Source: Styela clava
Taxonomy: Eukaryota
Assembly (NCBI RefSeq): GCF_964204865.1
Contig: NC_135258.1
Coordinates: 14,074,001 to 14,138,000 of the forward strand
Direction of reading: 5' to 3'
DNA length: 64,000 nt
Each line of letters opens with the position of its first letter. The stretch's first letter is position 1. The notes beneath the pieces were generated by a model, which was given only the letters and a program-made list of their open reading frames with translations, searched no databases and had not been told where the DNA came from. Shown here in pieces: positions 12,275 to 57,047 of this stretch. A program made the translations under genes and the position numbers.

Positions 12275-15200
12275 TCACATAACGTTGTAACGGTTGCTGT
12301 CGCTCGTTTGTAGATCTATGGTGTCTTCTTTTGATTTCCAAAACTGAGGGAAAGAATACTTGAGAAGCGAGGGCGAGTTCCGTCTAACCCTGTATCGAGG
12401 CGGTTGAAAATACAAGAGCCCAATTAACTTATATAATTATCAACTAATATAATTATTGATAGTAATAATACTTACGTTACAAATACAACAACGCCGATTA
12501 CAATGATGAGGACTAAAACAACGATGATTATTGCAGCGATCGCACCACTGCTCAATCCCTTGTTTTCTTGCTTGGCAGTTCCACCGACATTTTCCACGTT
12601 TTTGTCTAAACGCGACAGTTAATAATATTAATTTAATGCACCTGGGTACAATAACATATGCGTGAATATATGTACACACTGTATATATATTTTAAAAAAT
12701 AATGAACTAGCGAGGTCATGCAAAAGCAAAACATGCATTGGAACATATAAAGCCGTTGTTTTTTTCGTTGTTTTTGTGAGGCGGTGTGCGGGGTTATTGT
12801 GTCTGCAGAAAATGGTGTAAGCTCTCCCATGATATTTACCAGTTGAGGCAGGCTTCGTAAGTGCAGTTGTATCGGGCGACTTGTCATTTTTCAGCGTAGT
12901 CGTTGTGAGTTTAGTTGTAGTGGTGGATTTTGCAGTGGGCTTTGGTGTCGTAGTGGTCGTTTGTTGGGAGGTTGTGGCCTTCGTAGATGAGGTTGTCGCA
13001 GCAGGTGTTGTTGTAGTGGTAGTTGTTGTAGTGGTAGTTGTTGTTACCGGAGTCGTAGTAGTGGTGGTAGTCGTTGGTGTTGTTGTTGTAGGAGTGGTAG
13101 TAGACGATGTTGTAGTAGCTGTTACAACGTGTACAACACAGAGAATCATGCGCAAGGAATGTCGAAAAATAATAGCAATGAATAAAATACGTCAAACAAA
13201 ATTCCGAATTTGTTTAAGGTATATTTCAAATGACGGCAAGGGTATTAATATTAAAACAATATAGAATTTTGAAAAATAAATGAAAACTTCCATGATTTTC
13301 TGTGTTGGAACGTTGATAAATTGAGCATGCAAGAAGACACCAATGAAATGAAAACCACACCACATGCCGTCATTTGATTTGTGTTCATTGTGAATAAAAT
13401 TACTATTAGTAAAACAACTACATGTTTCCACACGACAATCTTTACAAACCACCGAATATTTGGATAAAACATTAAAGTCAACACACCAGTCGTTGTTGTT
13501 GAACGCGTGGTTACTTTTGTGGACGTTGTCTGTGTGGCGGTGGTTGTCCTTTTCGTAGTGGAGGCGGGTGTAGAAGTTTTTGTGGTTGTTGATGTTCCTT
13601 CTATTGGTTTCAACAAATTTGATGAATGCATTAATGTTTCGTTGAACACGTTTAGAAGTTGGTGTTTTCGTATTGATAATAGCCCCCATTCAACCCAGCA
13701 TATTTAAAAGTATCTATAAAGGGTCTCAATCCCTCTAACGGTCGACATTAAGCAGCCGCACTTCAATTATATATATTGAAGTTTGTTGATGGAATGCGAA
13801 GTTTGTAATGAAAGGAATGAAGTATGAACAAGCTATGGGAACATAAATTGTGTTAAACTTAAAAAAATAAAATACGACAAAAATGATAAATATCTAAGCT
13901 TCGAGATTCTATCGGGACATTGTATATTGACAACCATGCGTAAAAATCAAAAACCCAATCTCACACTGTACGCAATCAACCATAACAATATGACAACAAA
14001 CTGTTTGTTAGGTGTGGGTGGAAGAACTTACTCGTTGTTGATGACGTGGCCGCGGGAGGTGGCCTGCAATCTGAGTTATGCGTCATTCTGCTATTCCATT
14101 TGAGACTCTTTTCGCATACAACCTCATATACAGGCTCAGTTTTGTAAGATCCCGTACTGTCGCTTACCCAAACGACATACCCTTCAGTGATACAAGTGAC
14201 GTTGAAAACAGAGCCCATCCGATTTCGGCATGTAGGTTCGCTTCGCCTCATTCCTGGCCTGGCGTTGGGAACCGGTGGACATTGGTTGTCTGTTTGGAAA
14301 ATAATAAGCAATAATTTTTTGATATATTGTTTCAGTGCGCTAGTCTATTTTGTTTTCATTATGATATACCTTTTACATTGACGGTAAATCGACAGTACCC
14401 CACGTTTCCACTTTTGTCTCTGGCGGTATAGCTAAATGTCTGTATTCCTGCCGCTAATGAAGCCGGGGATCTCATAGTTGGTACCTGAATATCCAAGTCG
14501 CTGACAGCTGCAAAGAAATTAGGAGATTATATATAACAACTGATGAAATTGAATCATGAAAAAATACTGCGAGTATCAAACTCACCTGTTTTGTCGTCTT
14601 TCCATGTTGGTGTCGTCCACGAATAGCTGGCTGTTGAAGCACATGATGGAAGTGAAATTTCTGCATCGTCTGGACAGTTTTGTGCAACAGGAGGGCTGAT
14701 ATCTGCGAAATGACAAAACCAGTAAGTCAAACAAATTCTGACACGTTTGAACACGCTTTATAAGAAAACAATACTGCTCTTGTTCTAAATAACTGGATCA
14801 GATATGGCTATGAGCAGGGGCACAAACAAAATATGGCCATACAAGGTTTATTACCCCAACTATGGAAACTGTAATTAGACTACTTACCAACATCCGCTTT
14901 TCCGGCGTCATCTATACAAATGTTTCCTAGCGCGAGTTTGCCGTCCCGGCATAAACACTTTTTGTCTGTATCTGAAATCGCTACACACATTTCTCTACAG
15001 TAATCACCATCGCACGGATTATTTTGTGGTTCTGCAATGTAGCGAGTTATATTTATTACATTCTACTCCACACGTAGCTAAATTTAATTTTATTAAAAAT
15101 GGCCGAATGAGTCTGGAATCGTGGATTGTAATATGGTTAAACGAAGGTTTTGTAGCCCTACATTGATGTTTTAATTTTTACTATAGGCCCTACCGTAAAA

Positions 15201-18200
15201 TAAAACTATTTGTTGTATACAGACCAATCAATTGTTTGAAATTTTTGATAACAACTCATTGTAATCAACAACTGCTTTTAAAATTCAACAAAGATTGCTT
15301 ATTGGTGTAAATTCAGAAATAACATAGGAACCCATAAATTTAATAGGCGACGCTCCGGCATTCTCTATTTCGAGTCCAGTATTCGCCAAAGCATTTGATT
15401 CAAATTAAGTCTGTCATCACCCACTACTAAAGACCGCATTTGGCCTCCTCGTGCTGAGTGAAAACATTATTCATTTATACAATGTTGCTTACTGATGAAT
15501 TTCGCATAAAAACTGTTGCTGTATATAGAGAGTGTTGTAACTCGGAAAAATTCTGCTGGTCCATAGGGTGCCATTGAAGGTGCTCCTTCAGTAAGATTAA
15601 ACCTCTCGAGACGACTACTCTTTCCGTCCACGACGTAGGCCATGCCTTGATGTATTTTCAAACTAAAAAATAGATTTTTGCGTGATGTTGCTAGAAAGCT
15701 CATCAAAAGTCCTTTGGTTTACTCTGTAAAATTAATTCTCAAATTGTACCGGCGCAAAAGATTGCTCTTACCGAGAAAAATTGAAACAATTTTTTTATTA
15801 TCATGTCAGCCCGAAAACAAAGCTTCCCTATCAATCATTATATCGAGAGGAACGTTGCTGTGGTACCTTTGTATATATATATACGGGGAGAGTGTGACAA
15901 GACGTTAGAAATTCGGAAGAAAACAGAGACATGTTATTGCGGTAGGAATCCTTTTGAATAGTATCTTTGAAATACTTTTGTATTACATATTATTAAATCT
16001 AGGTTTACATATTATTAAATCGAACCCCATATATATACGAACACATAATTTGACAACAGTATCTACTTTTTTGCAATATAATAAATTTGTTCCAAGATTA
16101 GTAACAACGTTCAATCAGCTTGCATTTGCGATGTGTTGAAAATTCATTCTAGATCAAAATTTAAAAGGTAACTTACTCGATTATGTAGGGGCTGATCCTA
16201 GTGATATAAGCTGAAATATCATATTGTTTGTATTTCTTCTGCTTGGGTGACGTGTCGTTAATTTTCAATAATGCTAAGAGGTCAAGTTCGTATATAATGG
16301 CGCTCTTAGCTTCAGCCACATACAAAAGATCCGCTGGAAATGACAAATATCCGATATTTAAAATTATGTATCAACCACAACTGCCTGGTAACAATGTTGA
16401 GGCAGATAGACTGATGCGAAGTTAAGAAATGAATTATTCGGAATAAATGTAGCAGATTATAAAATTTTATGTGTGGCTCTGGTAGGCTACTACACATTTT
16501 ATTCACGCAATTGTCGATTGAAAATATAGATAGCCCTTCTCGTTAAAAATATACATACTTTTGTAATCGATTGTAATAGCATGAGGCCAATTAAGCTTAT
16601 CCAACACAATTTCTTTTCCACTTCCATCGTATCTACAACGCAATACCTGGCCTTCTCCTTCTTTGGAGAATGTATCCGTCCAGTAGATATATCTGCAAAA
16701 AAGTATAAGATTGAACTACTTGCCCGTTAATCCACAGTGTATAAGGTGAACAGCAAAGAAAATCAACACAGAACGTTTATAAAACTTACTTGTATTTTAT
16801 ATCTTGTGTTATCATTCTTATGCTTGTGGTGTTGCTCTTTCCTGGTTCGGGCTTAACGATTGTTCTACTAGAGGTGCCGTCTTTATTGGACACAATGATC
16901 GTGTCTCTTTCATTGTCAGCGTAAAATAGGTTACCGGTTTGCGGGTCTACAATCATGCTGTTGGCTGTAATGTGGGGTATATTAGTATTTATCATTTACT
17001 CTCTCGAATCCCCGAATCGAACTCAACAATACCAAGGTATTTAAGTGAGAGAGAAATAAAGTATGTTTGAGGACTATCAGCCATCTTAAAAATGTATCAA
17101 ATATAACCAGGTAGAGAAAGGCCTAGTGGTTGCAAAAATGTACCACGGAATGTCATATTTCATCACTGCCAATATTTACTTGAATCCAATAAAGAATCAT
17201 CTTAAATTATTTTTGATTATATAGTTTAAGCACGAAGAGATTCAAGAATATTTTTTTTGTCGAATCATACCATAAGAAGAAGCTATTTGCGTGTATCGAC
17301 TTCCATCTACTGATGCTCTGCTGACAGTTGATTTTTTCTTGTCTGACCAGTACAGATACTTTGAGTTAAGGTCGACGGCGACGGTTACTGCTTTCCATTT
17401 GTGACCTTAACGAAAATGATTTTGTTAATGCTACTTCTCGAAGCCGTGCCTGAGGTTGCATGAAATTTGACGTTTCTCGGGTTAGATTCAATAAAACAAC
17501 AACTTTCTTCCTTCTTAAAACAACATTTTATGTGTCCGATTATATTCATTAGACAACCTACCGAGTGGAACAATGCTGTATTGCAGAGTTGCGTTGTTTG
17601 TAGAATCTGTGATTGGTATTTGGAATACTTTTCCTTGTCCCGCATCGGCGACAAGCAAGTAGTCATCTTCCACAAGAACTGTAAAAAACTGCATTAGTGA
17701 GAAATGATCTTTTGGAAACAGATAGCTCTTTAAAGGATAATTTAATGAACTTACGTGGTTGGCATTTCTGCGTCACAGGATTCAAATGGTATCCGAGTGA
17801 GCATGCACATGATCTCGTGGCGTTAATTCTTGGGAGACAAAGATGTCCACAATCGCTTCCTCCACATTCCCCTGAAGAAGGTTCTGAAAAAAAATGGGAA
17901 TAAAAAGCAGCTAAACGACCAGAGCCAACTGATGTCTAATAAATTGTCGTGAACGTTTCTCGAAGCACCTTATATTAGTTACTCGGTTCGAACAACAACT
18001 GTAACCAAACTCATACCTGTGTCAAGCGAAAATTCTTCATTGTGACTAAAAACTGCAATTCCTCTGGGCTTTCCGCTCAATGTGTAACGGAAAACTTGCT
18101 TTCTTCTCTTAGTTATTATCCAGACTGAATAGAATCGTGCACCTGTCATGCTGTACCTTGCATGGACATCGGAGACGTAGAGATAGTCCTGAAAAATAAC

Positions 18201-21200
18201 AAAAAATGACATAAGACATAACGTACTAAAGGTTTAAAAATCTGAAGCGAGATTGTTTTTTCAACAGTCTGCGGGACTATAAATAAAATTACCATGTACG
18301 CTGCGACACCCCAGAAAATTGAACCTCCTCTGTAGTGATGTTGAGTTTTGTTAGTTCCATCTAGAAGAGAGCTCATCACCATACCTCCATAGCCAGTGAA
18401 GTCCGTCCAGTAAAGCCTGTGCATCGTTAATTTTTAATTAATTATTATCCACGAAAAACTAACATTTTAATATAGAGAAAAAAATTTTTTATTGCATTAG
18501 TTTATAAGAGTATAACTGAGTATGTTTTACTGCAATGTGATAATGCTGTTAAAATTCTGTAATTGAAATTGAGCAGACCTTTATCAGACAGCGAAAAAAA
18601 AAATGGATAAACAGATTATATTATAAACAATAATATTATTCCGTAAACTCGAGAAAAACTGACCAAGTGGTGAAACGCGTGATAAACAAAATTCTTTCTT
18701 GGCCGCTAATCTCTCAACGGTTACGGGCCTCAGAACAATAGCTTCATATAAACAATAAGATTATTCAAGATGAAGACTTGATATAAAAACACGAACTGAA
18801 AATCAGTTAACCATATTTTGTGATCGTGAAATATTTTGAAAGGATATCAAACTGTTTCCGTATTCCCGTGCATCCCGTATTACAAAAGTAATTCTTGAAC
18901 GTGAATAACAGTTTGTATTTTTAAGATAAAAACACACGCTATCAGGTCACGTAGCGATTACTTAATATTCGGCGGCTGACGGAATAAAAAGTCACATGAT
19001 TTTATTTAAATTTTATCTCAAGTGCACTAAGTTTACTTCCGCTAATTCCTGCCACATAAATTGCAATCGAATAACCAGGTATCCGACTACTTTCATTGTA
19101 AATGAATGTTTTGAAAACCAAGATGTGGAACTGCGCATTCTGCATTGTGATATAGAGGGAGTTTTAGTTATAATCGTCGAATAGTTAAAAGTTTAGTTAG
19201 CAAAACTGTCTGGTAGTAGGGAAAGTAATAGTCAGAAATGACATGATGCTGTTGAAAACCAAAAACACACGCTTATGTTACGATTAGTTTCAAGATATGA
19301 CGAAGAAAGTTTCGCTTCATTTTGCGGAAAACCACTTTTCGAATGAGTTTTATTGATTCTCAAAGTTTTATCTCTCAATTTTACCAAAAATATACACTTA
19401 TGCTTCGATTAGTTTTAAGACATGACGAAGAAAGTTTCGCTTTATTTTGCGAGAAACGACTTTTCGAATGAGTTTTACTGATTCTCAAAGTTTTATCCTA
19501 AATTTACAATGACATTCTACACATAATGATTCCTCGGACGCGCGGTCAAAACGTTCTAACAATAGCAAGCGGTTGAATGTGAGCAAGTGAATTACTTGAA
19601 ACAAAACACATTTCTCTGCATAATATGTCCTATGATTTTTCCCAAGCTAAAATCATAGCATACCTGTCATCTGTGTAATCAATGGTGATTCCAGTCACGT
19701 CGAAAACGTTTGGAAACTTGAAAAGAGTTTTCGGACTTTTTCCTGCCAAGTCTGTGACGATGATTTTAGATCCTAATGCTTTATATGTGGAAAATATCAA
19801 CAGTCTGAAAAAAATATTATTGAAACTTTTCAATAATTCTGATGATATAAAAACTTGGAATTGCCAAGAGTTTTGACAAAACAATTGATCAGTCCATTGA
19901 AAAATTGAAGCGATTTTGCCACAATAGAAATTTTATAGACATGTATGTAACTTTCAAACGATTTAAGAATAATTATACCTGTTTTCAGGTAGTGATAACT
20001 ATCTGACTACATTGGTACAACCCCTCGGGCGTGTTTTAAATTCATTTCGAAAGTTTAGTATCGACGCCCTTCGGTCTATAAGCTAGTATTATTTAGCAGA
20101 TTTCAGATAAACTTTTTACAAAGCAGCACTACAACAATGAAACATACCGTTTTACTGAATGTACTGCAAGCCCATATGCTGGATCTGGAGCTGTCCTGTA
20201 AACCGGGGTGTAATAGTTAAATGTGTTTTCCGCAGCCATTACCCATTTAAACTCGGAATCCGTCCAATATAAATTATCTGTTTTCCAATCATAAGCTATA
20301 CATTCAACTCCATGTGCCATTCCTTCGAAATATCTCTCGCCCTTTTTCTCTGTCATACTCCACACACCAATGTATTCAGACCTAAAGTATTTGAAAAAAC
20401 AAATGAGGTCGTGACTTTACAAACATTTGCTGCCGCACTTATGAAGGCCTTTTACGCGATAATCAATGCTAAATACTTTTGTACATTAATATGATTAGCA
20501 CAAGTATATGATATGTTATGTCCTCCCAAACGAGTTTTTTTCGTTATCGTTTTTTTATCCTGAATTTCATCTAGAAACCAAATATTTCTCTCTCTAAGGC
20601 GGATATTGTAGCAAGTACGTGTCTTTGAATGTGTCAAATTGCCTTGACACACATCCATGCTTTTACTTTTTTGTATATATACCTGTAGTCTGTAAAATAT
20701 AATCTTTTTTTATTGTAATCTGCTGCAAGTGCCCAGTACTCTGTCATTGAACGGTTTGACCCGGTGAGAACAGTAACATTGAAAGATCCACCATTATCGG
20801 TCTCCTGCTTGACAATCTCAGGATCGGCCTAAATTTATTGAAGCGTTAAATTGACGTCTATTTAGTATAGTTCAATAAATGCAATAAAAGTTCATTCAAA
20901 TAAACTTTGCATTACGCACCTGAACACGTAATAAGTGGGTACTTTCGGATGCGGCATCATAATTTGTCCAGATAACAAGTGAATCATCGGCTGTAAAATA
21001 TATGAAGAAATTTTATATCGTATTTTGAAAAATAGTTAATGAAAACCAACACGAAACATGCTAATTTATGGCATCAACAAATAATTGATATGTTCCTAAT
21101 TAAGTGCTGATATTTTTAACACAATTTTACAGTGTTAGATAATACGAGCCGAAATGTCGAATTCAAAATTGAAGTAAAGTGAAATAAAAAGAATAAAGAA

Positions 21201-24200
21201 ACACAATAAATTATTGTGTCTGTCCCCACAATATTAAAAGTCATATCAAAAAATTGTGTTCAAGAAACATTAAAGAAAACATTATAAATAAACAGATAAG
21301 ACATTGCCAATAAAAATAAATTTACTCCACTTTGTTCTAGATTTACGTCTTTCTTATTCATATTCTACGTATGAAATAGGATCGAAAGAGTTTATGAAGT
21401 AATGTTTAATAAACAGAAAAATATAATCTACAATAGCTTACGGCATTTTGAAATATTGCAATATTCCCATCGAGTTTTGTTATTTATAGTGTAGCACCAT
21501 GTTCCTCTCAAATCGTTATCTGGATTTCTAAAAGAAAAATTCAAGGATTAATTCCAAGCAATTAAAATCTTCATTATTCGGTTAATTTATCTGATGGGAT
21601 ACTTTTAGAAATCTCTACATTTTATAGTGTTAGAATAGTTCAATAGCCACACTTCCACAGAGTTTTAATCAAACTTAAGGCATTTGCTTTTTTCCTTCCT
21701 CAATCATAACTTTATTTAAACAATAATAATTTTGAGAAATATTTGCTTACGATGTCACCGAAACTGTATTATTAACACGGAATTTATATATTTCATAATA
21801 TTACAATGTATCTATTACCTAAACTGTTATTATTTGAAAGACAATAGGATCATGTGACGAACTAAAGCGATTCTGATTCCCGTGTATTTTCTGATATGAA
21901 TTACGTACGTTATTGTTTATGCCAAAATATAAAAATAGAATCTTTGTATTCAGATTTTTTTCCGATTTAGCGTACTTCTACATCAGCATATTTTGCCCGT
22001 TCCGTTATTGAAATAATCTTTCGGGACAAGTACACAATAAGACGACCCATTCATTACTCACAAAATGCTGATATATTTTTAGATAGATAGATATCAACTT
22101 TCTGTCCGTATATCTCAGCTTTTCAAGGTTTATGAAATTCTGCAATACTTATATTATTTTTCTCTGAAACAATTCACGTCTATATTCAACAATCAACATT
22201 CAATTATCAATCTTAAAATACTGAAAAGTGGTATGGGAGGATAATATATACATTTATTTCTTTGTTTATTCTGTATGATAATTCAATACTATATGACTTC
22301 AAAAACGGGGGTTAGGCATTGTTTTCATAGTTTATGTAGCTATTGTATATTAGGGTCTAATAATAAAGCGATATAGTTACCTGCAATAATTGTGGTGTCC
22401 ACCATCTTTCGGCACGTGTTTTGGTTTGTGTGGCTTATCAGTATCCCATCGCTGACACGTCGTTCCGGAACCTGTCACATCTCGCGTCCCTCTGTACCAT
22501 GTACTTGGGCCGTCGATGCAATCATCTAAGCACAAAAATCAGAGATAGCTTTAATATGGGGATGACGCTGTCCATGGGCGTTTATGCGCAAATAAATCGA
22601 ATATATCGCTTAGAATTCGAAATTTTGTCACACTTGTTCAGGTTCGCCATATCATTTACTTCGTAAGTTTAATATTAATAAAAGCGCTTTGTTTCGTTTC
22701 CAGTTTTATTTTTTAGAATTCATTGAGTACTTTTATATACGTCATTTTTGGGTTACCATGATGCTTCATCGATTGACATCATAATAAAACAAATCATATA
22801 ATCATATAAAAATCAATCATAATAAAACAATTACAAATAAATTGAAAATTTGTTTTCTTACTATTTGTATTCAATTAAAAAAAAAATTATTAAATCAGGT
22901 CAATTCAATCAAAAAATACTAATTGTACTTTCTTATTATATATATGTTGTTCATATTCTGAAGTTTAGATCACTTATAGCTTTGCACGTAACAAATCTGT
23001 ATAACATATTCTCATTGAACAGAAATTAGTTGATGGTATTCGTTATCTCCAATCTTTCGCGTAAGCTATAAATGTTGGCCATAATATTATTGTTAATAAC
23101 GTAATTAATGATTGACGATACTTAATCCATTAGTATTTATTATGGGCCAAAGGTCGATGACGAGTTAGCGATTTGTTGTAGAAAGTATCAATTAGTTTAT
23201 TGAAAGATAGAGTGCTCGCGCTATATTAACGATAAAAAGAACATTCGATAAAACTCCCATTTAGTGACATCAGCGAAACCAAAATGGTATGTTCGATAAT
23301 ACATAGTTCATATACGGGATAATTCATAGGGTTTTTAGGTAGCCAAGTTTCAACAAAGTGAAATCAAATTGCAATATGCTTTGCTCGCAGTTGCCGCTCT
23401 CGCTCGAATCCGTATGGAGAATTAAGAAACATCATTAGTCGATTCATACTTATAATCATCAGACGCAATATTCTCCGAATTTCGAATATGATTTTCGTGA
23501 TACTGTTAAATTATTAATTTCATTATTGAATCATAAAGACGAGAAATATTGTGATAAATACCATATAAGTGACTTGCAATTATTTTCAAAGTTAATTTAT
23601 AAGGAACGAAGAGCCGCGGGCTATGACAGAATTTCAGGAAATGGACATTTTTGGATTAAAACTTCAGGAAGCGCATTCACGCTTTCCATATATGATCTGT
23701 TAAATACTCTTCACTCAATTTTTAATTTTTTATATTGTTGTCTGGAATAATTCTTATTATACTTTGTTTTGTTCACTTGATTCCTACAGGTGTCGAAATA
23801 AGAGTTTTCAAAAACTTTTTTTTAGTTTTATCAGCGATAACTCAAAAAGCACAAATTTATGGAATTGTTACGAAATCTCGAAAAAAATGTCCAAAGACAA
23901 TAAAAAAAATGGTCGAAATGCGATAGTTTAATCTTTTTTGCAATCTTTCATCGTCGATGGTGGGAAAATTGCCTTTCTATATATATAATGTATACGATTA
24001 CAATAAGTAAAACGATAAGTTGAATTGCCAAATTAATTGTTCATTATAGATCATATGAAAATCTGCAAAATCGTTGATAACATTTGTTGAATTTATTCCA
24101 AATTGTGTTAGAAAATAATCACTGATTATGGCTTCTTTTCATTACAAAATAATATTTACAATGCTCAAAGGTGACTTCGTATCTTTTCGTGACTTTAACC

Positions 24201-24955
24201 CTGTTATTTTGCTTTATTTATTTAACATTAAATCACGAATCTAAGCAAATTTTTGTAAAAATATCAAGAGTTAGTGTGGCGACAACACGGACGTAAAATT
24301 CGGAACATGAAAGATAGTTATTTGTTGCATATCTCTTGTCACGGAATTTGCTGGTTTGCCCCGCGGGCTATCACTGTGAGAGTTAGAATAAGGTTTCATT
24401 TATGTCTCGTTGGCAGGTAATTTTGGAATTTTGTCGACCAGACATCTAGTATATTGTACTTAAACATGCGTCATGCCAACACGTCATCGCATCAGCAGAC
24501 CCCAAATTGCGTCCAACTGAATATTTTCACACTTGAAAACATCAAAATTGATAAACGGTTTATCTTCACTTGTAAAATATTATGTCATAAAGCCAGCTTA
24601 TAAAATGTATAATCTCGACAATATGCCACGATCTACTAAAGAAATGACGCGATATCGCGGGGTAAATTTCGAAAATCTTGGTAGTTTCGAAGAAATTTAT
24701 GAAAAGAGCATTCTCGAATACGCATTGTTGTTGGGACATTCTCGATTCTTTGCACACAAATTACAGAATCGTATGCGAAGTTAATAATTTTACATTTTCT
24801 GTCACAAATTTAGGTAATGTACATAATAAAATTATAAGTTATGCAGAAAAACATTTCAAGTGATTACCTGTTGACGTTGTTGTAGAACCCTGTACCCGCA
24901 CGCACGCCACGCAAAGGATGAGCAACGTGGCACCAATTACATAACGGTGATCCAT
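12275..24955 (-). CDS. Gene A: type I membrane protein SP-kringle-(YWTD propeller-EGF)x2-HYR-sushi-mucin-TM-short tail, 1172 aa, LRP-like ectodomain
   Basis: 24 GT-AG exons in frame (3519 nt): 24868-24955 (MDHRYVIGATLLILCVACVRVQG signal); 22381-22525, 21442-21527 (kringle, CQRWD..HNYCRNPDND..WCYT..RWEYC); 20920-20990, 20683-20828, 20148-20381, 19664-19804, 18293-18416, 18017-18188 (propeller 1); 17755-17883 (EGF); 17562-17678, 17271-17405, 16790-16964, 16559-16692, 16177-16333, 15493-15662 (propeller 2); 14888-15031 (EGF); 14586-14702, 14370-14507 (HYR, DISPPVAQNCP...YTARDKSGNVGYCRFTVNV); 14032-14289 (sushi); 13487-13600, 12840-13118 (Thr-rich); 12476-12605 (TM, GAIAAIIIVVLVLIIVIGVVVFV); 12275-12389 (tail, ...SNRYNVM*). 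Confidence 0.9.
12900..13118 (-). repeat. Coding (ACN)n low-complexity tract encoding a poly-Thr mucin stalk
   Basis: Plus strand is rich in GTT/GTA/GTG triplets; the minus frame reads TTTPTTTTPTTTTTTTTPVTTTT... Confidence 0.9.
19280..19498. repeat. Direct duplication (about 95 bp, two copies) in gene A intron 7
   Basis: CGATTAGTTT.AAGA.ATGACGAAGAAAGTTTCGCTT.ATTTTGCG...ACTTTTCGAATGAGTTTTA.TGATTCTCAAAGTTTTATC occurs at about 19281 and 19407. Confidence 0.8.
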
Positions 24956-41126: not shown

Positions 41127-41155
41127 GTTTAGAGATTGCAGGGAACTGTTGTGAC

Positions 41156-45700: not shown

Positions 45701-47128
45701 TTCGTCTTTCCACATCCAATCGCATGTGTGGTATCCCAAACTAACTGAGAATAAAGTATCAATATTGAAGTGCAATAAAGATAGTACTTGGTAAATGATA
45801 AAGTACTTGCAATGAAAAATGTAAATATATTTGTTTGTATTTTTTCTGACATCGGCATATATATTAAATGGAATCTAATAAAGACGATATATTTTAATTT
45901 TCAATATTATTTCAAATGTTGTCGAAATTTAAAAGTTTAACTATATAATCCAATGTGTAACATTTGAAAGAAAATTCTATTCAGTTATGGATTGACAATT
46001 CTGGCGCTTGTGGATGGATATAAAGTTTGAAATTTTGCATATACCCATATCTACTTTATCTGTAATACTTAGACGTATGTCATAATGTATTTCTCACTTC
46101 TTTTTATTTTGATGCAATTCGTACCTGTGTGTAACGTCCACATATTTTATTGGGGAAGCAAAAATTGGTTGAGTAATCATAATTGTTTCGTTCTCTGAAC
46201 CAATCCGCCACTGCCATGGTAACATCTTAATAAATAAAATAAATATTAATATTATTTATTCAGTTTTGCATATCAAATATAGTATCAACCAAAAATACGC
46301 TCCGTAATCACAGACGCGCTTGTGTGTTACAGTATAATATGCTTATTTATAGATTTAAACTAACTGTAGAACAATTTCAGTTCGAAACATCGTCATACAC
46401 CTTCACAATAAAAAAATATGATTCATGAACATTATTATTCACGGAGAAATATATACAATCGCTTACTTCTTAGCTCTTGATTAGTGATGAATATGTTTTC
46501 TCCGATAAGCCCATAGGGTTCAAAATTGTATCGGTTGCTCGGCGCATAAATACACTTATCAACGTATGATTGAGCTTGATCAGCCAGATCTGGGTCCCAA
46601 CTGAGCATCCGTAGATTTGATCCATTTGGTGACACCTGTATAAACATGCCAGAATATTTTGAATGTCGATGCTTGCGATTACAAGCTGTGATATATATAT
46701 TATATTATGATGAACGATTATGGCGATGTGGATATTTTATTTACTATTTATTTTATTTTTATTCAGTATCTGAAATAGTCCTGGTAATTTGCACTTGCAT
46801 GTAAATTTCCAACACCTCGGCAAGGATAAACTGACAAAACTTTAATGAAGTATGCTTCGAAGCATTTGAGAATAGCATTATTAGATCTACAACAATAGTT
46901 ATACGTAAGTAACAAGATAGTAGGAATAGCCTATATGACTTTGTCTTTCTTAATCCCTCCAAACCACTTTCGAAAACAATATACCTTTGTCCGATAGTAA
47001 TTGTGCACCCTGAGCATATTGACTACTTCATCTTTTATAATCTGGCTGGATGAGATATCGACCGAATATACTAATATTAAAAAAATATTAAATACTTTAA
47101 ACTTAGAAATTGCACAAATACGTTTCAT
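42796..47128 (-). CDS. Gene B: CAP (CRISP/GLIPR-like) domain fused to a Ly6/uPAR three-finger domain, with GPI-type signal, 374 aa
   Basis: 7 in-frame GT-AG exons (1125 nt): 46985-47128 (signal, HNYYR); 46467-46635 (NLRMLSWDPDLA..GENIF); 46125-46225 (WFRE..CGRYTQ); 45560-45744 (LVWDTTHAIGCG..VCKYGPAGN..PY..G.WC); 44590-44749 (hinge SACP..C.NKLC); 43313-43504 and 42796-42969 (LRCVVC..C..C..C..C..C..CCSKDFCN, then GS and hydrophobic FLLYSYITFLAIWVVM*). Confidence 0.88.
43803..44297. mobile_element. Foldback MITE with about 150-bp imperfect inverted arms in gene B intron 5
   Basis: CTCATCATAGAG..TAGGTATTGTTTGCATTTTTCAACAACCCACAGAATG..TTGGCAAGAAGC is mirrored by GCTTCTTGCCAA..CATTCTGTGGGTTGTTGAAAAATGCAAACAGTACCTA..CTCTATGATGAG. 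The left end TA|CAG is Tc1/mariner-like. Confidence 0.8.
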
Positions 47129-47565
47129 GCCGTCTTCTCTATTAGTTAAATAGCTTTATCAACCCAAAGAAACGACGTATGGAAGTTCATTCCGCTAACG
47201 TTCGCTCGATAAACTAATGACGTGTGATCCCTTTTTCTGCATCACAGACAATTTAAAATAAAATAAAACAAAAAAGCTTTAAAATGGCCAGATTAAAATG
47301 TATGGTTTGACCAAATGTTGTATATGTCACAAAATAAATCTTGATCGATTACGGGATATTTAGTTGTCGTTTATTTGTTAAATTTAAGTCGCGAAAATTT
47401 ATGAAATATCATCAGATTTTCTGCATAATTGAGTACGGATATACCAAAACAACGACTTCACTCTCATATGCCACAAGAAGCGCTAAAGAGCAAGTAACAA
47501 AACAGGTATGTACGGAAAAGCGTGCGCGGTAAATATTAGCATTTAGTGTCTTAATGTTTTTCTTA

Positions 47566-47804
47566 TTGGACACGTAGTGGACATAACGATCGTTTCAATA
47601 TTATGTTGTTGTTGTTGTTCTTTGACACGTTTTTAAAAAGTCGCTTTTCTCTTCGAATACTGGACCAATTGCTTTGAAATTTTCAGTGGTTAAAGATAAA
47701 ATTTTTCTCCAGAAGGCTATAACTTTTTTTTCGCTATGACATCATCAAAATTATTGCCATTGGGTGGCGCTACGTGTCCATATATTTGAGCATAGCTCTC
47801 TTGT
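47566..47804 (-). mobile_element. Interspersed repeat, possibly a Helentron-type non-autonomous element
   Basis: Close reverse complement of 53202-53443. GGACACG/CGTGTCC subterminal inverted motifs and an AAC microsatellite. Confidence 0.65.
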
Positions 47805-50756
47805 ATTTATATTATCTGGACTACCTGGTTACAAGATGGTTTACATAACCCCTGGTTGGTTCTGGCTTCCTCCGGCATTCAAGTCGATTCTTTCGTACTG
47901 GTAAATGTATATAGGCCTACCTCTAACTCTCACCTAGGGTGCCACTGAACTCTTCTCAGTTTTCTGCTCTGTATTTCTACGAGAGTCGTACAGGAGTTGA
48001 GTTTTGTAGCGCAGTCGGAGTTTGGCGTATTTCGTGTTAGCTGCTGGTGTTTGTCACGCGCGGGAACTTTTACAAGACAATTAAATTCTGTATTTAATCA
48101 GTTTAAATGTACTCATTGCAAACTACGGGCACAATCAACGCTGAATTTTCTTGATGTTACTTTAATGTTATCGTTCCAACTGTATTTTGTGGTGTTGCAG
48201 TACATTTTTAGTTCAGTATACATTCATCAAATGGTTTACGAGATCTATGGCAACAAGTATTGTTTAGTTCATATTTGTTGGTCCATGTATATATTGAAAG
48301 AGTTTTTATAAAATATATAATCATTAATATTACTGTTCGTTGTTTGATTTCTCGTGCTACTCCTGGTAGTTTGCATTTGCGTTGTTTTGATTTGGTTTTA
48401 TAGCCAGCATGTTGTAGTGCAGTATTTTGCTTAGAATTATATTGAATTTTAAATAGTTACGATAAGTAAACAGTTGTTCGTAACTATTCAAAGGAAATGG
48501 AAATCGAAAAAAAAAACATCAGATTTAAAAACGGCAACTATAGACAGACTGGGAAAGCAGGTATGTTACAATGGTGGTTACAAAGAAATTTGTGGAATTA
48601 CATCAATCACTGATAACAAATTTTACAAAATCATTTCATCATATATTCCAGACTTAATCAGTTTTGGTCAGGCACATATAGCGTGGAGTTTTCGGAAAAT
48701 TTCGAATCTATCTGCTTTGTTGAATGGAACAGATTTTTCCAAGACAAATTTGAAGATGACGTAAATTTATACTCAGCAGTTGCTTCTTCCTATACATAGG
48801 AAAATATGACATGTTTTTCGCGGGGATGTCGCATGGTCCGTCTTGTCGTAGAGATATATATATGTATGAAACAGTAGAAAGTTTTTTCCGATCTTCCTGT
48901 TCTTCTCATATTACGTCTCAAATTCAGAAATTAGGACTTCAAAAATGACCGCCTCGCAAATGGTTTTGCTGACATACTCTTTCTCATCGCCTGTAACATG
49001 TTATCAGTTTTCGTAGTTTAATCATCTCATTACAGGTATTTATTGTTCGTGATCTAACACAGGCGCTTTTCCATCTTTCCTGGAAAAGAATCTCAGTCGA
49101 AAACCTATGAACTTCATACGTCATCGAGTTTGCGGTATACTGTTGAATCGAACTATGATGTTAATAATGTACTTTATGTCTCACTAAAATTTGATCATGT
49201 ATTCACCAAACCACGGGTTGTTTTTGTCTGGATGGCGTGTATGTCATTAAACACGTTTATGGTGAAATCACCGAAGTCGCATTAAAAACACAAAATGTCA
49301 AAATAGGTTGAAAGGCTGAATATGTTCAGTTGGTTCTGAAAACTCTTTTGGCATAATCTGTTTTGAAATCATTAAATAAATAAAAATATTTTTTTCACTT
49401 ATTCGATAATCGGGCTCTTTCTTTTAAAAACGTTTTGCTTATTGAATTTATCCCAAAAAATCACATTCTAAATTTACACATGATGATTATGTTCAGAAAA
49501 TATACTTGATTCGTATTTTCATCTAGTTATAAATATAGGCGATTCGTATTGTCAGCGTTATGTCATAGCTGCTTTATTTTTCGTAATGTTATGTCTGTAT
49601 TTGTGAAAATTGACTTGGTGGTCATGGCAATATTACGATAAATTCTGGAGTTTCTAGAAAACAACACGGGATTCGAAAGTATGACGAATCACACATATCA
49701 CAGTTAGGAATAATAACATGAATGACATTGGACATTTTGACAACGTATTCCCGAATACTTCGGGTGTTCATGAAGCTTGCGCTCTGAAATTATCTATATT
49801 TATTTTCATATTTTGTCGTGTGGTATAGTTCTCAAGCTAATAATCGCCTCTACTTAGTTTGTTCGTGTTTTTTATCAATGTTTACGAGTTTGCGGTGAAA
49901 CTTGTATTGAATAACGGTTTTACCTGGTAAAGCGAAGTCTAAGATTTCTCGTGTGCCTAATCCGTATTATATGCGAAATTGTGTATAAAGTTTTCTGAGG
50001 AATGTAAATACAGGACAGCAAAACCGCCCCGGAATAGAGATAATGTCAAGATAACGATCACCGTTTTTGGTATTTTGTACGACAAATATTGACGCTATAT
50101 AATACTCGTTTAAAAGTCGTTATACTATACATGACACCATAATTGCGAAATTTGCATTCATATTAGTACACGTAAAGCGGTGTAAGATTATCGACTCCCA
50201 AACAAAACAAATAACTAGATGAATCGACGGCTAAAACAAAAGTCGAAATCACTAACAATTGTTTACGGATTATTCCAACGCACTCCATCTGAATAACAGA
50301 CTATTATCAGCAAAAAAACTTACATAGTTCATAAAATGGTATAATCTATAGACATATTCGTCACGTCTATTTGTAAAAATTTCCTCACGATTGACGAAGA
50401 AAGCGTAATGTTAATATTATTAAAGAATCCCTTTTTCGCATATATATCGCTAATCATTGATGAAAATTAAATTCAGTTTTACATTAGAGGTAACGATATA
50501 TGTATTCAACCCATAATACTGGTTTGACGTCATTTTAATTTATGTATTGAAACAAAAATAAAATAATAACTATGAAAGAAAATAATAATATCAATAACAA
50601 CAATAATATTGGTAATATAATTCCAATGACTACACAGTTGCGATATTGAAAAAATAAAGTAATATCCGACAAAAATTGTCTGACGGATTAAATCTAAATA
50701 TAATTCTAAATCACTGAAATTTGAATTTTTCGTTAAGATCCATTTGCTTCTGCCTT

Positions 50757-53700
50757 TTATATGCAACTTGCTTTCTTCTTTGATAACGCCAAGCACGAAG
50801 ACTTGCATTTCTTTCGCAAGCACGGATTTGGAAGACGTTCTAAATAAAAATAAAATAGTTATATAAAATATTATAAATGAGGCATATGAAGGTGGCATAG
50901 GTAAAATAGTTGCGATTTTATTATATTAAAATCTTTTGCATGTCACGCCATATTACTTGATACATACCACACTCTCTGTTAGGTCATGAATCAACTGACT
51001 TTCAAACGTGTATATGTATTATAATACATATCATGTTTTAGGGAAATATAGCCTATAATGTGTTATATATACTCACTGATATATTTTCTGGTAAATGATC
51101 TACTGTAGACAGACAAGCTGGACGCTTTAAAGAAAACTGAAGGCCCAAAGTTGACCAAAGCCTTTGGCCCAGTCGCGCCAAGTTTGTATCGCAAAAGATG
51201 TAATTTCCTTTCATCAGAAATATAAGCGAATCCTCTATGAACTTTCAATCTAAAATTTGAAAAGTTATATTGTAACTTCTAATACAATGTACCATTATAT
51301 TCATGTAAAAGATAAAAAAAAAAATTACTTTGTCAAAAAGTATTTCTCTGAATATAAATAGTCCATGAGGTCGTTCCGTTTGTATTTTTTAAGTGGAACT
51401 GGTGCAATGAGTTTCATCAAAGGAATTTCGTATATAGAACCGTCTTTGGAATCCATCACGTATAGCTTGTTTCCTAAACAAAAAAGTGTTATTTGTATGC
51501 GGTCTTGTACTAATTCTGAAGGTAAATCCGATTATAATAAACATAAAAATATTCGTACTTTCATAATCGATGTCGATTCCATATGGTAAGTTAAGATTAT
51601 CGAGCACAACTTGCTTTCCACTTCCATCAAATCTGCAGCGAATTACTTTACCTGATCCCTGTTCTCCCATGGTGTCGGTCCAGTAAATCATTCTGAAAAA
51701 AACTAAATGTTTATCTTAAGGAACAAAGCCCTATATTTTTTTATATTTTTGCATAATTCGAAATATTACATTTGTAACTGACATATTTTCATTGTTTATG
51801 ATTATTGAATTACAATGAATTACACTTTCTATGAAATAATTGTGCTATCTGTATATATACCGGTATATGAAATTTGCTATTGGAAAAGATGTTTTAAATA
51901 TACATTAAAAACATTGTGACGTACTTTTGTTTGGAATCTACCGCAAGCGCTTTCACGTCTGAGTTCGTTTCTTTATTTTCAACGATAACTTTTTTGTTTT
52001 TCCCATATCTATTCATAAAGGCAATATCGTTGTTCTCATTAACATAAAAGATGTCTTTTGTGACAGGATCCAACTTTATATCTTTCACTGTAAATCAGAG
52101 AAATAAATCCGTAGAAGTTTAGAATCGGAAAAAAACATATAAAACGATTCAAGAAAATTCATGCAATAGCCTACTTACCTTTTCCCGTTACTGAAGATCC
52201 TAGAGGTTTAGCATCTTTATTAAGTAACGCAAATCTAACTCTTCCCATTTTGAAGTCCGATGTATCAGAATCATACATATAAACCGTGCCGGTGGAAACA
52301 TCTGTGGTCATGGTGCTGATATGGTTTGTTTTACCTAAAAATTGAAAAAAATATGTCAAAAAAACTATTTTTTTTGGATAAAATATTATTAAAGCAAGGT
52401 ATAAAATAGAACACTTCAACTCACCGAAATGAACAACACTGAACTCTCCTTTTGAAGATAAAGGAATCTGATATACTTCACCCGAGGCATCGTCGAGTGC
52501 CAGCAAATATTCATCATTGACAATATCTGAAAGCAGTTTGTAAAATCGTCAGCGCCTCGAATAACAATTTTAATACATTTTTCGCCTTCAGCCTTTGGCG
52601 CATGTTTATCAAGACCAATATAGAGAAACTAATCCACAAATACAGCTGTGTATGTTATGTGTCAAAACAACACAAAATAAACAAGAAAGGCAGCTCTTCT
52701 GTTGTTGAACTAGGAAATAAGTATTGACTTACTTGGAACACATTTTCCAGTTTTCGGTTGCAATTTATAACCTGGAGAACACACGCATTTGAAACCTTTT
52801 TGATTTGGAAGACAAATGCCACCACACGTTTTCTCGCATATGTTCGATTCCAAAGTTCCTGAAACAATAGACGCCATACAAATTTATATGAAGAATTTTA
52901 ATTAAATAAAATAACAATTTAATTAAAACAAAGGTGCGTTTCTCGTAATCATAGACACGAAGGCTAAATCGAAGTATAACGGACATGCAATCTGTCACAG
53001 TAGACTACCGAAACCGTCACAAGGCGCCTTAAATTCCTTAATGACGTCATTACACACAAAAAACGAATTTCATAGAAATTTTTGAAATAAATAAATATAA
53101 TAGCCATCTAACGAAAAATACAATCTCTAACCACTAAAAATGCCAAAGCAATTGGTCCAGTACTTGATGAGAAAAGAGATTTTTTCATAACAATACGAAG
53201 AACAAGTGAGCTATGCTCAAATATATGGACACGTAGCGCCACCCAATGGCAATAATTTTGATGACGTCATAGCGAAAAAAAAGTAATAGCCTTCTGGAGA
53301 AAAATTTTGTCTTTAACCACTGAAAATTTCAAAGCAATTGGTCCAGTATTCGAAAAAAAAGCGATTTTTTTAAAAATGGAGACAAATAATAACAATAACA
53401 ACATAATATTGAAACGATCGTTATGTCCACTAAACGTGTCCAAAAATACCAACAAGAACAACGACAACATAATAACAAAACTTTCCAAATGTACATTTCG
53501 TGTCCAAAAATTGGTTGACGTATATCATTAATGTCCGCGTGCGGTTTGGATACGACTGTCACAATATAATTCTGTCTGAAAAGTAGTTGCTATGGTATAC
53601 GTATTCAATTTGTATGTAGGCCTGCCTGCATACCTTCTAGTAATTATTCATGCATGGCAAGCTCCGAACTAACAATTACAAACGTAAGTTATAGATTTTA

Positions 53701-56700
53701 GTTTTTTCTCAGCTCGTGACTTATTTTTAGATACCGATGGAAATTCGATTTAATATTACTCTTTTATTCCAACAGAAATGTCTAAAAATAATGCATCGAT
53801 CAAAACGAATTTATCTTACTTTCTGGTGAACTCTTATCTGCTAATATAGCAATCCCATGCGGTAAATCCGGTCTGCTAAATGTGAAGATTTGATTTGTTC
53901 CTTTCCTCAAAATTTGAACATGATAACGAATGTAATCAAAATAATTGTATCGTTTTTGAGAATCAGAAACATATATGTAATCCTGAAACACAGAAAATAT
54001 AATAAATATAATTTAAATCCTTAATATCAGATTTAAGGATTGTTCAAAATGTTCCGTATCCTATATCCTCACTTGAAAAAAGCTACTTGGTTAGCCTTGT
54101 GATTTGGAAAGATATTACAAAGTTGCAAGCAGCAAGATTTTTTTTTCATCATTTCTACGTGAATATCTGATTTATTCCAAGTTCGATTTTGGACGATGTA
54201 TAGATGTAAAACACAAATATCATAAAATCATACTTCGTGGACGGCTATATCCCGAAGTTCGGAAGATTTTTGGAAGTAATGTTCTGTTTTATCGGATCCA
54301 TCGAAACGACAACTGAGAATCTTGCTTGCGTAACCGAGATAATCTGTCCAGTAAATTCTGTAGAAAAGCATAAGCATGTATAATAGATGCGAGGCATAAC
54401 ATGGGCACATAGCATGAAATGTGCAAGTTATTCTGTACCGTTCGTCATCAGCTGCAAGTCCCGTAACTTCGATAACATCCGGGTATCTAAATAGAACTTT
54501 CGCATCTTTTCCAGCTAAATCAGTCATGATAATTTGTGTGTCGAAAACCTTTGAATCTTTTCTGACGTAAGTTGAAAACACCAATTTCCTTTTAAAAAGT
54601 ATATTGCGTTAAATATTCATAATGAAACAATAATTATGGTTTAGGATTTAGCTCATTGACGTGTACAGCATAGGTATGAGCGGGTTCATAAGATATGCCT
54701 GAAGCGTTATTATCATACGAGACAATTCTGTTAAGAAATATAATCTTGTGTGGCATGACAATGTTCATATGATATCTTGCAAAAGTTTATGTAAACTTGC
54801 TTCTCACCTATGTTTTTGTAAAACCGCTATAGCCTGTGGCTTATAAGGTTCTGTGTTGTATATGGGAAATTGAGCTTTAAAATCCTTATCGGCAACCCAC
54901 ACTGATTTTGTTTTGCAATCTGTCCAGTAAAAATTTTTGGTAACATAATCCTGTGCTATAGAGTGTATGTCACCCACTTTTCCTTGCAAGTGACGTTCGA
55001 TTGCCGAACTTTTGACATCCATGATACCAAAGTAGTTATCTCTGAAAAACGAAAAAGGAATATCAGCGACGTTTTTTTTTTATACTTTTTATCTCAGTGG
55101 CAGGATCTCGCTTGTGATAGTGATTCGTGTAATTCTATCCAAACGTTGGAAATAACCAAGCAATAAATGAAATTTTTATCTATTTTTTATTATTCTCGTG
55201 TACATTTAAAGATAGCATTTATAACAGAAAAGAGCGATGGCGAACAATAAGAAATTTCCTATGAAGCTTTGTATAAGAAAATAAGGGAGAAAGATCAAGA
55301 TTAGTAAAGGTTATGATTACAAAGCAAATAATATAATAGACTTCATTGCCAAGACGGTATGTAGACAGAAATAAATGCCTGGTACAAAATGCTTCAGGCG
55401 TTTTGATAGATCTTATGAAATGAACCAAAATTATTTTGTAATTTATACGTATTTTGTGAATAAGTACATTAAATGGGTTATTAGACTCACTTCAAGTCTG
55501 TGAAAAAGATTTTTTCTCCTTTCTCATCCGTTTCTACTGCCTTGAAAATAGAATTTTTGTGAACTTCAACGTGCATTCCACCTGCCGGTACGTTGTTTTG
55601 TGATGAATATTCTGGATCAGCCTACAGATTCAAAATTAGAAAAATATTAGAAAAAAAGATATGACGTGAAAAATATATAGGATATAATTTCCATTTGAAA
55701 CTTCCATTTTATTTTTTTTCAGTCTATTAAATAACTACAGTTTTTCGGTAATTTCAAATTTTTGACAAATGTTCATTTCTGATGAACTGTCGATATGGCT
55801 ACCTAAAGAACTTGAAACTCGCAACTTTTAGTTTTTTTTTAAGTTATCCACCAACCTTTGCATGATCAAATATAGAACTGTTTTGTTTCGCGTTGTATCC
55901 TGCCCATACTACTAAAACTTTGCTTTCTGTAAAATTAAAGTGAAGACTATTTAGTAGAGACATCATAAGTAAAAAATTGTATGAATATTTTCCTTTCCAT
56001 CAATGTTAAAAAAATCATATCAGTTTGATTCATCTTATAATAGGACCAGTTTGAAACCTGATTGAAACGGAGATCACGGCCACGTTGTGTAGCGCCACCC
56101 ACACGTAAAAACACTTCATATTGATATGCGTCAGGTCTAGACGAAGCATTTCATAATGAATCCTGTACTTGAAACGTTTTATGACTGAACGGTGATATTT
56201 GTAAGTAGTAATGGGAATCGCAATACAATAACTTACCGCATTTAGGAAGGTCACAGTATTCCCATCTAACAGCAGGATCGGTGGTGTAACACCAAGTGCC
56301 TCTAGGATCTCTGTCTGGATTTCTGAATTTATTGTTCAAATATTATTAGCTTACATTACTAAATATTGCACTAGAAAAACGGGAAGAGCTTTTATTATAA
56401 AGTTATTATTTCGTCATTTATGTTTAATAAATTATGCGTAACTACGTGGTCTAATTCACGCATAAATTCAAATACTTTTAGCGACGCCCTACGTCACCAT
56501 ACGTAAAGCCCGGTACCGAGAAACATTTGAAGTTGTGCGCATTTCCGGTAAAAAATATTCCTTGGCCTTTCCGTCTATAATGACCTCAGTTAGTTTTATA
56601 AAGGTGCTATGTAATTTAGTTTTGATACTAAATTAAAATCAAATACTTATAATTTAGATACCTGCAATAATTATGATCACCACCATCTTGCGGGATTTTC

Positions 56701-57047
56701 TTCACCTTATGAGGAAAACCAGTGTCCCATCTTTGACAAGTATGGCCAAGTTTTGTCAATGATCGTTTTCCAGTATACAAATAACTTGCACCGCTTATGC
56801 ATTCTGAAATTATATTTTTATTTGGTTAATTTTGAAAACCTTGAACAAATCATGCAAGCAGTGTCTATTTAATGATATTGTTTAGAATATTAATACTCGT
56901 TTTCTATCCATTAGAATGAAATGATTTAATTTTCCTAATATTAGTTTAGTATAAGTAGAATTGCATGAAAACTAACATACCTTTATCTGATTGACAATAA
57001 CCAATGGAGAGAATTATTGCAATTACGGTCAGTCGTAAAGTTTCCAT
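50757..57047 (-). CDS. Gene C: secreted paralog of gene A, SP-kringle-YWTD propeller-EGF-YWTD propeller-truncated EGF, 749 aa
   Basis: 17 in-frame GT-AG exons (2250 nt): 56981-57047 (METLRLTVIAIILSIGYCQS signal); 56662-56803, 56237-56322 (kringle); 55856-55926, 55491-55621, 54808-55041, 54439-54588, 54234-54357, 53820-53982 (propeller 1); 52733-52858 (EGF); 52425-52526, 52179-52334, 51925-52087, 51559-51692, 51329-51473, 51077-51249 (propeller 2); 50757-50839 (KRLPNPCLRKKCKSSCLALSKKKASCI*). Confidence 0.87.
53020..53510 (+). mobile_element. Nested copies of the same interspersed repeat in gene C intron 9
   Basis: Core ACAAGTGAGCTATGCTCAAATATATGGACACG...CGTGTCCAA (53202-53443) is flanked by an older related copy (AAAGCAATTGGTCCAGTA at about 53146, CGTGTCCAA at about 53500). 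Confidence 0.65.

Follow-up and report, generated by a model that had tools for sequence, protein, structure and literature searches.

The YWTD propellers of LRP4, LRP5 and LRP6 are ligand-binding modules, and soluble ectodomains of LRP1, ApoER2 and VLDLR, which arise by shedding or alternative splicing, coexist with the corresponding membrane receptor. In vertebrates the kringle receptor Kremen works together with LRP6 propellers and Dkk (PMC5014086). Here we describe two paralogous genes, A and C, in a 64,000-nucleotide stretch of the Styela clava genome (contig NC_135258.1, positions 14,074,001 to 14,138,000; hereafter the window, in which all positions are counted from its first letter). 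Both genes lie on the minus strand, A at 24955-11828 and the coding region of C at 57047-50757, and both encode a kringle and two YWTD propellers in one chain. A is a single-pass type I membrane protein; C is a secreted, expressed, soluble paralog of the N-terminal 750 residues of A, without an anchor.

A and C resemble LRP4, LRP5 and LRP6 in having a tandem pair of six-bladed YWTD propellers with an EGF module after each, which is the propeller–EGF succession characteristic of the LDL-receptor family. A Foldseek search with the predicted structure of C returned LRP4 (8s9p, E 2.7e-34), LRP6 E1E2 and E3E4 (about 1e-33), and also LRP2, in the range 1e-32 to 1e-34. Identity to LRP4, LRP5 and LRP6 is, however, 15-18%, two propellers are present instead of four, and A adds an N-terminal kringle, HYR, a sushi-like module and a mucin stalk, and has a tail without PPPSP or NPxY. 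The LDL-A repeat (PF00057) gave no match in A (P0164), C (P0096), or 15 family members scanned. As a single-pass receptor with an N-terminal kringle A is also reminiscent of Kremen1/2, but in Kremen the kringle is followed by WSC and CUB domains rather than by propellers, and Pfam scans found neither WSC nor CUB in A and C. Unlike the soluble forms of LRP1, ApoER2 and VLDLR, C is the product of a gene of its own, an old one, and has 38% identity to A and propellers that have diverged.

Gene models were obtained by chaining stop-free segments via frame-keeping GT..AG sites; searches used single exons or public proteins identical to the models, and the joined models were compared in scripts. The model of C equals XP_077971965.1 (P0151, 749 aa) at every residue, with the exon 7 acceptor at 54588, and has the following parts:

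50370..57047, minus strand: gene C, RefSeq LOC120339058; 17 exons, secreted protein of 749 aa
56981..57047, minus strand: exon 1, start codon and signal peptide; agrees with P0151
56237..56803 (56803-56662 and 56322-56237), minus strand: exons 2-3, kringle; Pfam Kringle on P0096, E 4.7e-20
53820..55926, minus strand: exons 4-9, YWTD propeller 1, with exon 7 at 54588-54439; RNA joints 54808/54588, 54439/54357 and 54234/53982
52733..52858, minus strand: exon 10, EGF 1; Pfam FXa_inhibition on P0096, E 0.0019, under the curated cut-off; joints in RNA contigs
51077..52526, minus strand: exons 11-16, YWTD propeller 2; all six joints in RNA contigs; AlphaFold model
50370..50839, minus strand: exon 17, cysteines 1-4 of EGF 2, basic C-terminus, stop codon TAA at 50759-50757 and unspliced 3′ untranslated region; sequence and RNA contigs

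Spliced RNA contigs from four runs in three studies carry every joint of C from exon 6 to exon 17. The joints have CT..AC ends, equivalent to GT..AG on the minus strand, and at 55041 a loose end continues into exon 5. In four runs, contigs cover the last exon continuously from 50839, past the stop codon, to 50519-50370, with no joint leading out of it; the transcript ends some 330-390 nt beyond the stop, and contig depth falls to about 0 below 50300. Nine runs contain approximately one quarter to one third of the words sampled from 50400-56400 of C, as exons alone would yield. An RNA check of the C model and its 3′ end, proposed in the sequence-only reading of the window, has thus confirmed the joints from exon 6 onwards and a last exon unspliced through the stop. 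The same reading would have been overturned by an untranscribed C, or by one spliced into downstream transmembrane exons; spliced RNA is present in four runs of three studies, and no such joint occurs in the RNA contigs. Since the last exon runs unspliced through the stop in RNA from three studies, C is a secreted protein and not an unfinished model.

No hydrophobic C-terminus or membrane span was found in C. A tblastn search (E up to 50) of the sequence between C and A (25.0-50.8 kb) for remnants of HYR, sushi, transmembrane or tail exons gave chance-level matches only; with no leftover exons there, the possibility that C merely lacks annotation of later exons was ruled out. The end of C had been placed after the second propeller, which requires correction: C ends inside the second EGF module, one residue past its fourth cysteine. 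The AlphaFold model of C has a predicted local distance difference test score (pLDDT) of 89 and a predicted template modelling score of 0.85, with pLDDT 88-94 for the truncated EGF 2.

Intron 9 of C contains a dispersed transcribed repeat (53111-53528), which is not part of the C mRNA and has further copies at 47555-47901 (inverted) and 62340-62564. RNA contig depth over the intronic copy reaches thousands, with many loose ends and odd joints.

The coding regions of A and C are separated by 25.8 kb, measured between the start codon of A (24955) and the stop codon of C, in agreement with the earlier estimate of about 26 kb between same-strand paralogs. The rebuilt models also bear out the common gene structure recognised in the sequence-only reading. 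All 16 shared introns occupy the same columns of the A–C protein alignment and have the same phases (1,2,1,0,2,2,2,0,1,1,1,1,2,1,2,1), for which the chance, on phases alone, is about (1/3)^16; exons 3, 4, 6, 8 and 14 are of equal length in the two genes (86, 71, 234, 124 and 134 nucleotides). An all-against-all comparison of stop-free segments gives ten collinear pairs of similar segments, all on the minus strand, linking 15.5-22.5 kb to 51.1-56.8 kb. The encoded proteins are 38% identical across 730 aligned residues, and within the Styela genome propeller exons of this type occur only in A and C. The window is AT-rich (G+C 31-39% for most of its length) and contains no runs of N. We take A and C to be the products of an old tandem duplication within a tunicate-only family.

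Comparison of A with C is too distant for a conventional test of selection. The Nei–Gojobori (NG86) silent estimate fails, with 72 of 110 four-fold sites differing, whilst the replacement divergence (dN) is 0.62 overall and 0.35 in the kringle. As the silent sites are saturated, dN/dS between A and C is unusable, and variants within the species, taken from the RNA contigs, were used instead. Ten coding variants distinguish the contigs from the window sequence of C, seven of them silent and three conservative replacements (His/Tyr, Asp/Glu and Val/Ile); random change would be expected to give 79% replacements, and the chance of three or fewer in ten is about 0.001 (binomial). C is under purifying selection, and does not evolve neutrally as it would need to if the pair were to be dismissed on that ground. 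Nor can a frame of 749 codons that has stayed open at dN 0.62, with saturated silent sites, be a neutral one, so that the argument against a recent pseudogene, made from the intact frames of both genes, holds at 38% identity. Between two public assemblies A differs at 7 of 1,081 amino acids and C at 3 of 749, which is no higher in C.

These results bear directly on whether C could be a truncated, decaying duplicate without function. Its stop lies inside an EGF module, at the position of the fifth cysteine, and it evolves faster than A, as such a duplicate might. The open frame and the excess of silent variants speak against decay, however, as do the abundance of spliced C in RNA contigs of three studies, the confidently modelled remnant of EGF 2, and the recurrence of the same end point in P0042 and in Clavelina P0200, two further short forms considered below. 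We regard functionless decay as scarcely credible.

A library search with exon 6 gave 158 matches; among the best 150, few have a kringle. The named members of the family are all tunicate proteins, from Ciona intestinalis (LOC100179640), Phallusia (two proteins), Clavelina lepadiformis (several genes) and Oikopleura dioica, and include Phallusia CAB3263510 and Clavelina XP_076815261; the remaining members are transcript contigs. Matches outside the tunicates are confined to one part of the protein, to the kringle (as in plasminogen and HGF) or to the propellers (as in LRP4/5/6, at 21-28% identity). On the basis of its named full-length relatives, the family is confined to tunicates. Identity to A amounts to 52-53% for Ciona P0193 and to 47% for both Clavelina P0194 and Phallusia P0195 (coverage 83-100%), and C is, over nearly its full length, 37% identical to the A isoform P0164 and 39-40% identical to P0042. 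An N-terminal signal peptide and a single kringle are found in both A and C, the kringle being present in all full-length members; the two YWTD–EGF units of both align collinearly with the family from end to end, and trees place both within it. A alone continues into HYR, the sushi-like module, a Ser/Thr-rich stalk, the transmembrane span and a tail with FP.FWK..ED and Y-x-x-hydrophobic motifs, C having nothing past the fourth cysteine (Cys4) of EGF 2.

Two sets of relatives lie at the margin of this definition. Kringle-less tunicate proteins (Clavelina 'LRP1B-like' P0162, and P0044) have two propellers, HYR, a transmembrane span and a FW.R..D tail motif. The coral 'LRP6-like' proteins P0264 and P0227 combine YWTD, HYR and Sushi domains (precomputed Pfam), but have no kringle, are larger, and are 21-23% identical. 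Database names within the family are all automatic ('LRP2-like', 'LRP4-like', 'LRP6-like', 'vitellogenin receptor-like', 'uncharacterized'); the LRP names are misleading, because LDL-A repeats and NPxY/PPPSP tails are absent. A full-text literature search found no description of a kringle/double-propeller family, and Oikopleura proteins with kringle or Ldl_recept_b domains are mentioned in PMC9643190 only as BLAST matches to coagulation-factor domains. That the pair could not be assigned to any named family was therefore a sound assessment, homolog, domain and literature searches having yielded no characterised one.

C is not the only short form. It groups, with support of 100 and on long branches, with two transcript-derived proteins, the complete P0042 (760 aa), which comes from another species, and the fragmentary P0127; a further homolog search brought in no named protein of the C type. 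P0042 breaks off where C does, with a basic stretch following. In Clavelina, P0200 (759 aa, identical in two annotations made independently) likewise ends one residue after Cys4, and P0152 (810 aa), which arose recently by duplication of the Clavelina ortholog of A, ends past a complete EGF 2. At least seven Clavelina lepadiformis family genes (P0194, P0012, P0200, P0201, P0203, P0011 and P0162) are on one chromosome-size contig of 24,617,235 bp, and the LOC numbers of three of these, within six of each other, suggest tandem clustering, the short form P0200 included.

A tree of 28 rows places A with Ciona P0193, Phallusia P0195 and Clavelina P0194 (Shimodaira–Hasegawa-like approximate likelihood ratio test, SH-aLRT, 87). 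The clade of C stands beside Styela A in a tree of 19 rows (SH-aLRT 96), a placement which the 28-row tree does not settle. In approximately unbiased (AU) tests, for which the groupings were chosen with the tree already in view and the trees came from quick searches, neither a single clade of all Cys4-truncated forms (p 0.52) nor a grouping of Styela A with the C clade (p 0.71, with the better likelihood) was rejected. P0200 has 11 of 71 residues derived in the C clade, no more than membrane-bound paralogs have. Together with the AU results, this lack of an excess in P0200 means that a single origin of the truncation is not supported; convergent truncation at Cys4 appears at least as likely as one origin. 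Whichever holds, soluble proteins of a kringle and two propellers have arisen on at least two occasions and been kept.

The model of A differs from the LOC120340152 isoforms P0274-P0277 only in optional mucin exons and in which tail is used, and agrees with the RefSeq isoforms across exons 1-21 and 23-24. The order of the protein is signal peptide, kringle, two propeller–EGF units, HYR, sushi-like module, O-glycosylated mucin stalk, transmembrane span and one of two tails:

11828..24955, minus strand: gene A, RefSeq LOC120340152; 24 exons and an alternative last exon, type I membrane receptor with isoforms of 1,041-1,172 aa
24868..24955, minus strand: exon 1, start codon and signal peptide; sole upstream ATG exon with a hydrophobic core and a phase-1 donor; RefSeq N-terminus agrees
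21442..22525 (22525-22381 and 21527-21442), minus strand: exons 2-3, kringle; Pfam Kringle E 3.4e-7 and 1.3e-8 for the two halves, 1.2e-18 on whole P0164
18017..20990, minus strand: exons 4-9, YWTD propeller 1; exon 6 matches LRP2, LRP4 and LRP6 propellers in the PDB, E 3.9e-10
17755..17883, minus strand: exon 10, EGF 1 with six cysteines; Pfam FXa_inhibition E 8e-6, under the curated cut-off
15493..17678, minus strand: exons 11-16, YWTD propeller 2; Pfam Ldl_recept_b, exon 14 E 0.0023, P0164 E 1.1e-7
14888..15031, minus strand: exon 17, complete EGF 2 with six cysteines; Pfam EGF_LRP2 E 3.3e-4, under the curated cut-off; family alignment
14370..14702 (14702-14586 and 14507-14370), minus strand: exons 18-19, HYR; Pfam HYR on P0164 residues 789-873, E 1.1e-9; exon 19 alone E 5.6e-6
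14032..14289, minus strand: exon 20, sushi/CCP-like module; predicted fold, with a Cys/Trp pattern kept in the family
13600-13487, minus strand: exon 21, optional mucin-stalk exon; Thr/Ser/Pro-rich translation, isoform alignment
13118-12840, minus strand: exon 22, predicted mucin-stalk exon; Thr/Ser/Pro-rich, absent from the RefSeq isoforms compared
12476..12605, minus strand: exon 23, transmembrane span; hydrophobic 19-mer, Kyte-Doolittle mean 2.4, in every RefSeq isoform
12275..12389, minus strand: tail exon 1, FP.FWK.KED motif and C-terminus YNVM; used by isoforms P0275 and P0276
11828..11948, minus strand: tail exon 2, FP.FWK..ED motif and C-terminus YQIMS; acceptor 11948, stop 11830-11828; used by isoforms P0164, P0274 and P0277

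Of the HYR–sushi–mucin–transmembrane–tail arrangement originally read from this part of A, the HYR domain, mucin stalk, transmembrane span and tail all stand, whilst the sushi module does so at the level of predicted fold only. Searches of Pfam and of PDB sequences with exon 20 gave no match even at E 10. Its AlphaFold model (pLDDT 81) gives as top Foldseek matches the CCP modules of MASP, C1r/C1s, PAPP-A, CR2 and factor H; the E-values are weak (0.016-0.7), the best matches being almost all CCP modules, so that exon 20 is predicted to adopt a sushi-like fold. The gene also extends further than had been supposed, for the second, alternative tail exon (11948-11828) lies beyond the end previously set at 12275. 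Intron 7 of A holds two tandem copies of a 125-bp unit (window 19258-19505).

The two tail exons are mutually exclusive in the RefSeq isoforms and are paralogous to each other. Ciona P0193 and Clavelina P0194 carry tails of the first type, Ciona P0282 and Phallusia P0195 those of the second; with both types present in Ciona isoforms, the tail switch predates the Styela–Ciona split. The cytoplasmic tail is 32-37 residues long, and in both versions contains FP.FWK..ED together with Tyr-x-x-Met/Leu/Ile/Phe at or beside the C-terminus. The FWK motif occurs in 28 tunicate sequences and in no other sequence among those compared; direct reading finds NPxY and PPP[ST]P in neither tail of A. At the C-terminus of a short tail, a Y-x-x-hydrophobic motif is a classic tyrosine sorting signal of endocytic and lysosomal membrane proteins, and from its presence we infer that A may be an internalising receptor.

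A more specific proposal is that A is a fused 'Kremen plus LRP' co-receptor for Wnt/Dickkopf, with C as its soluble antagonist. The vertebrate partnership of Kremen, LRP6 propellers and Dkk cited at the outset provides a precedent, the propeller pair of C superposes on LRP6 E1E2 and E3E4, and there is a borderline Dickkopf_N match elsewhere in the genome. The low identity to LRP6 noted above, the lack of WSC and CUB domains and a tail with neither PPPSP nor NPxY are nonetheless hard to reconcile with such a role, and an ordinary LRP5/6-type protein apparently exists in tunicates (Ciona savignyi P0236, with propeller and EGF domains only). We consider the proposal most improbable.

The Dickkopf_N match is the sole one in the genome, at G000:C2:14917642-14917776 on the plus strand, scoring 25.3 bits where the cut-off is 25 (E 0.008). 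The Kremen/Dkk lead was dropped: WSC domains and this borderline match are found elsewhere in the genome, with nothing that ties them to the locus.

The kringle and the propellers have had different histories in the receptor and in its short relatives. On full-length A and C proteins the Pfam Kringle domain is matched at E 1e-18 to 5e-20, whilst Ldl_recept_b is above the cut-off on A (P0164) and just below it on C (18.4 bits). Among the A orthologs of Ciona, Clavelina and Phallusia, which belong to different ascidian orders, propeller 1 is 61-69% identical; for the A-ortholog set the corresponding figures are 67-68% for the kringle and 44-45% for propeller 2. Between A and C the kringle is 60% and propeller 1 is 35% identical, and between C and P0042 propellers 1 and 2 are 37-38% identical. 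The short forms keep 84-88% of A-invariant positions in the kringle and 41-59% of those in propeller 1.

Aligned with kringles 1 and 4 of plasminogen (K1/K4), the kringle of A retains NPDxD, W, Y and RW.Y; more generally NPDxD, W, Y/F and R-W/Y are preserved, with basic residues at the PH-R-P-R positions. The lysine-binding pocket of plasminogen is formed by these residues, and the corresponding pocket-type residues of K1/K4 are also kept in the kringles of the short forms. In contrast to plasminogen the kringle is single, there is no protease domain and the context is that of a receptor; lysine binding is putative here. With 84-88% of the A-invariant kringle positions retained, some ligand may be common to A and C.

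These features suggest what we see, with moderate confidence, as the most likely working model, in which C shares a kringle partner with A, has a propeller specificity of its own, and modulates A. C would be a soluble binding protein in the same extracellular pathway as A, and would share with it the class of ligand bound by the conserved lysine-pocket-type kringle. Having diverged in propeller specificity, it might modulate access to A through competition or bridging and would not be a pure decoy.

A receptor/soluble-decoy pair had been proposed from the sequence. The receptor and its soluble paralog are borne out by the present analysis; a simple decoy for the ligand of A is not, given a propeller 1 that has diverged to 35% identity. 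A pure decoy would bind that ligand via the same surfaces and titrate it away, as might be expected from the same order of domains in a secreted and expressed C, its conserved kringle, and the repeated appearance of soluble paralogs in the family. Yet half of the positions of A-type propeller 1 that do not vary between ascidian orders are altered in C and P0042, the C clade is on long branches, and the two proteins differ strongly in charge and glycosylation. The kringle having been kept whilst propeller 1 and the charge have changed, plain decoy function, for which the binding face of the receptor ought to be preserved, is not the best reading, and we think it unlikely.

Several observations weigh against the working model too. 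C keeps just 47% of the A-invariant positions in propeller 1, which is the best-conserved part of the receptor lineage, and this divergence may mean that C has left the pathway of A altogether. C has an isoelectric point (pI) of 9.1, its last 35 residues include 12 Lys/Arg and no acidic residue, and it has a single N-glycosylation sequon; the matching portion of A has a pI of 7.2, and the whole of A has 11 sequons. This contrast fits a different site of action for C. The candidate internalisation or sorting role of the A tail, for its part, is read from the Y-x-x-hydrophobic motif itself.

If C has indeed departed from the pathway of A, it may be a neofunctionalised humoral or matrix protein with an unrelated job, for example as an opsonin, a clot or tunic component, or a polyanion-bound factor. 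Such a change would account for the fast propellers of the C clade (37-38% between C and P0042, against 61-69% in A-type propeller 1), for the basic tail and high pI, and for a clade whose members come only from Styela and two transcript sources. The kringle and structural core are, however, kept like those of A, the two genes are still neighbours, and nothing indicates a particular alternative function. We see neofunctionalisation as a genuine possibility, although not the probable one, and retain the working model of a shared kringle partner with C as a modulator of A.

Tunicates are the sister group of vertebrates, and to our knowledge many of their surface receptors are mosaics without a vertebrate counterpart or known ligand. 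The conserved ectodomain, the two conserved tails and the recurrent soluble relatives point to a real, undescribed ligand system. More speculatively, this could be a tunicate-specific capture or signalling system in which A is internalised via its tyrosine motif, its two tails predate the Styela–Ciona split, and soluble regulators cut at Cys4 have been selected repeatedly or kept since the ascidian ancestor; in this full form we put the idea forward only tentatively, as rather doubtful. The family is an orphan built from familiar modules and introduces no new principle, and the A–C pair provides a clean, testable case of it.

Two other repeats were noted in the window. A tandem array of a 65-bp unit occupies 6642-7210 (8.8 copies, 88% matches). 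A repeat of approximately 500-700 bp has three copies, at 660-1344, 9840-10472 (inverted) and 60803-61373, the first two being inverted relative to each other and about 9 kb apart; it could be a mobile element or its ends.

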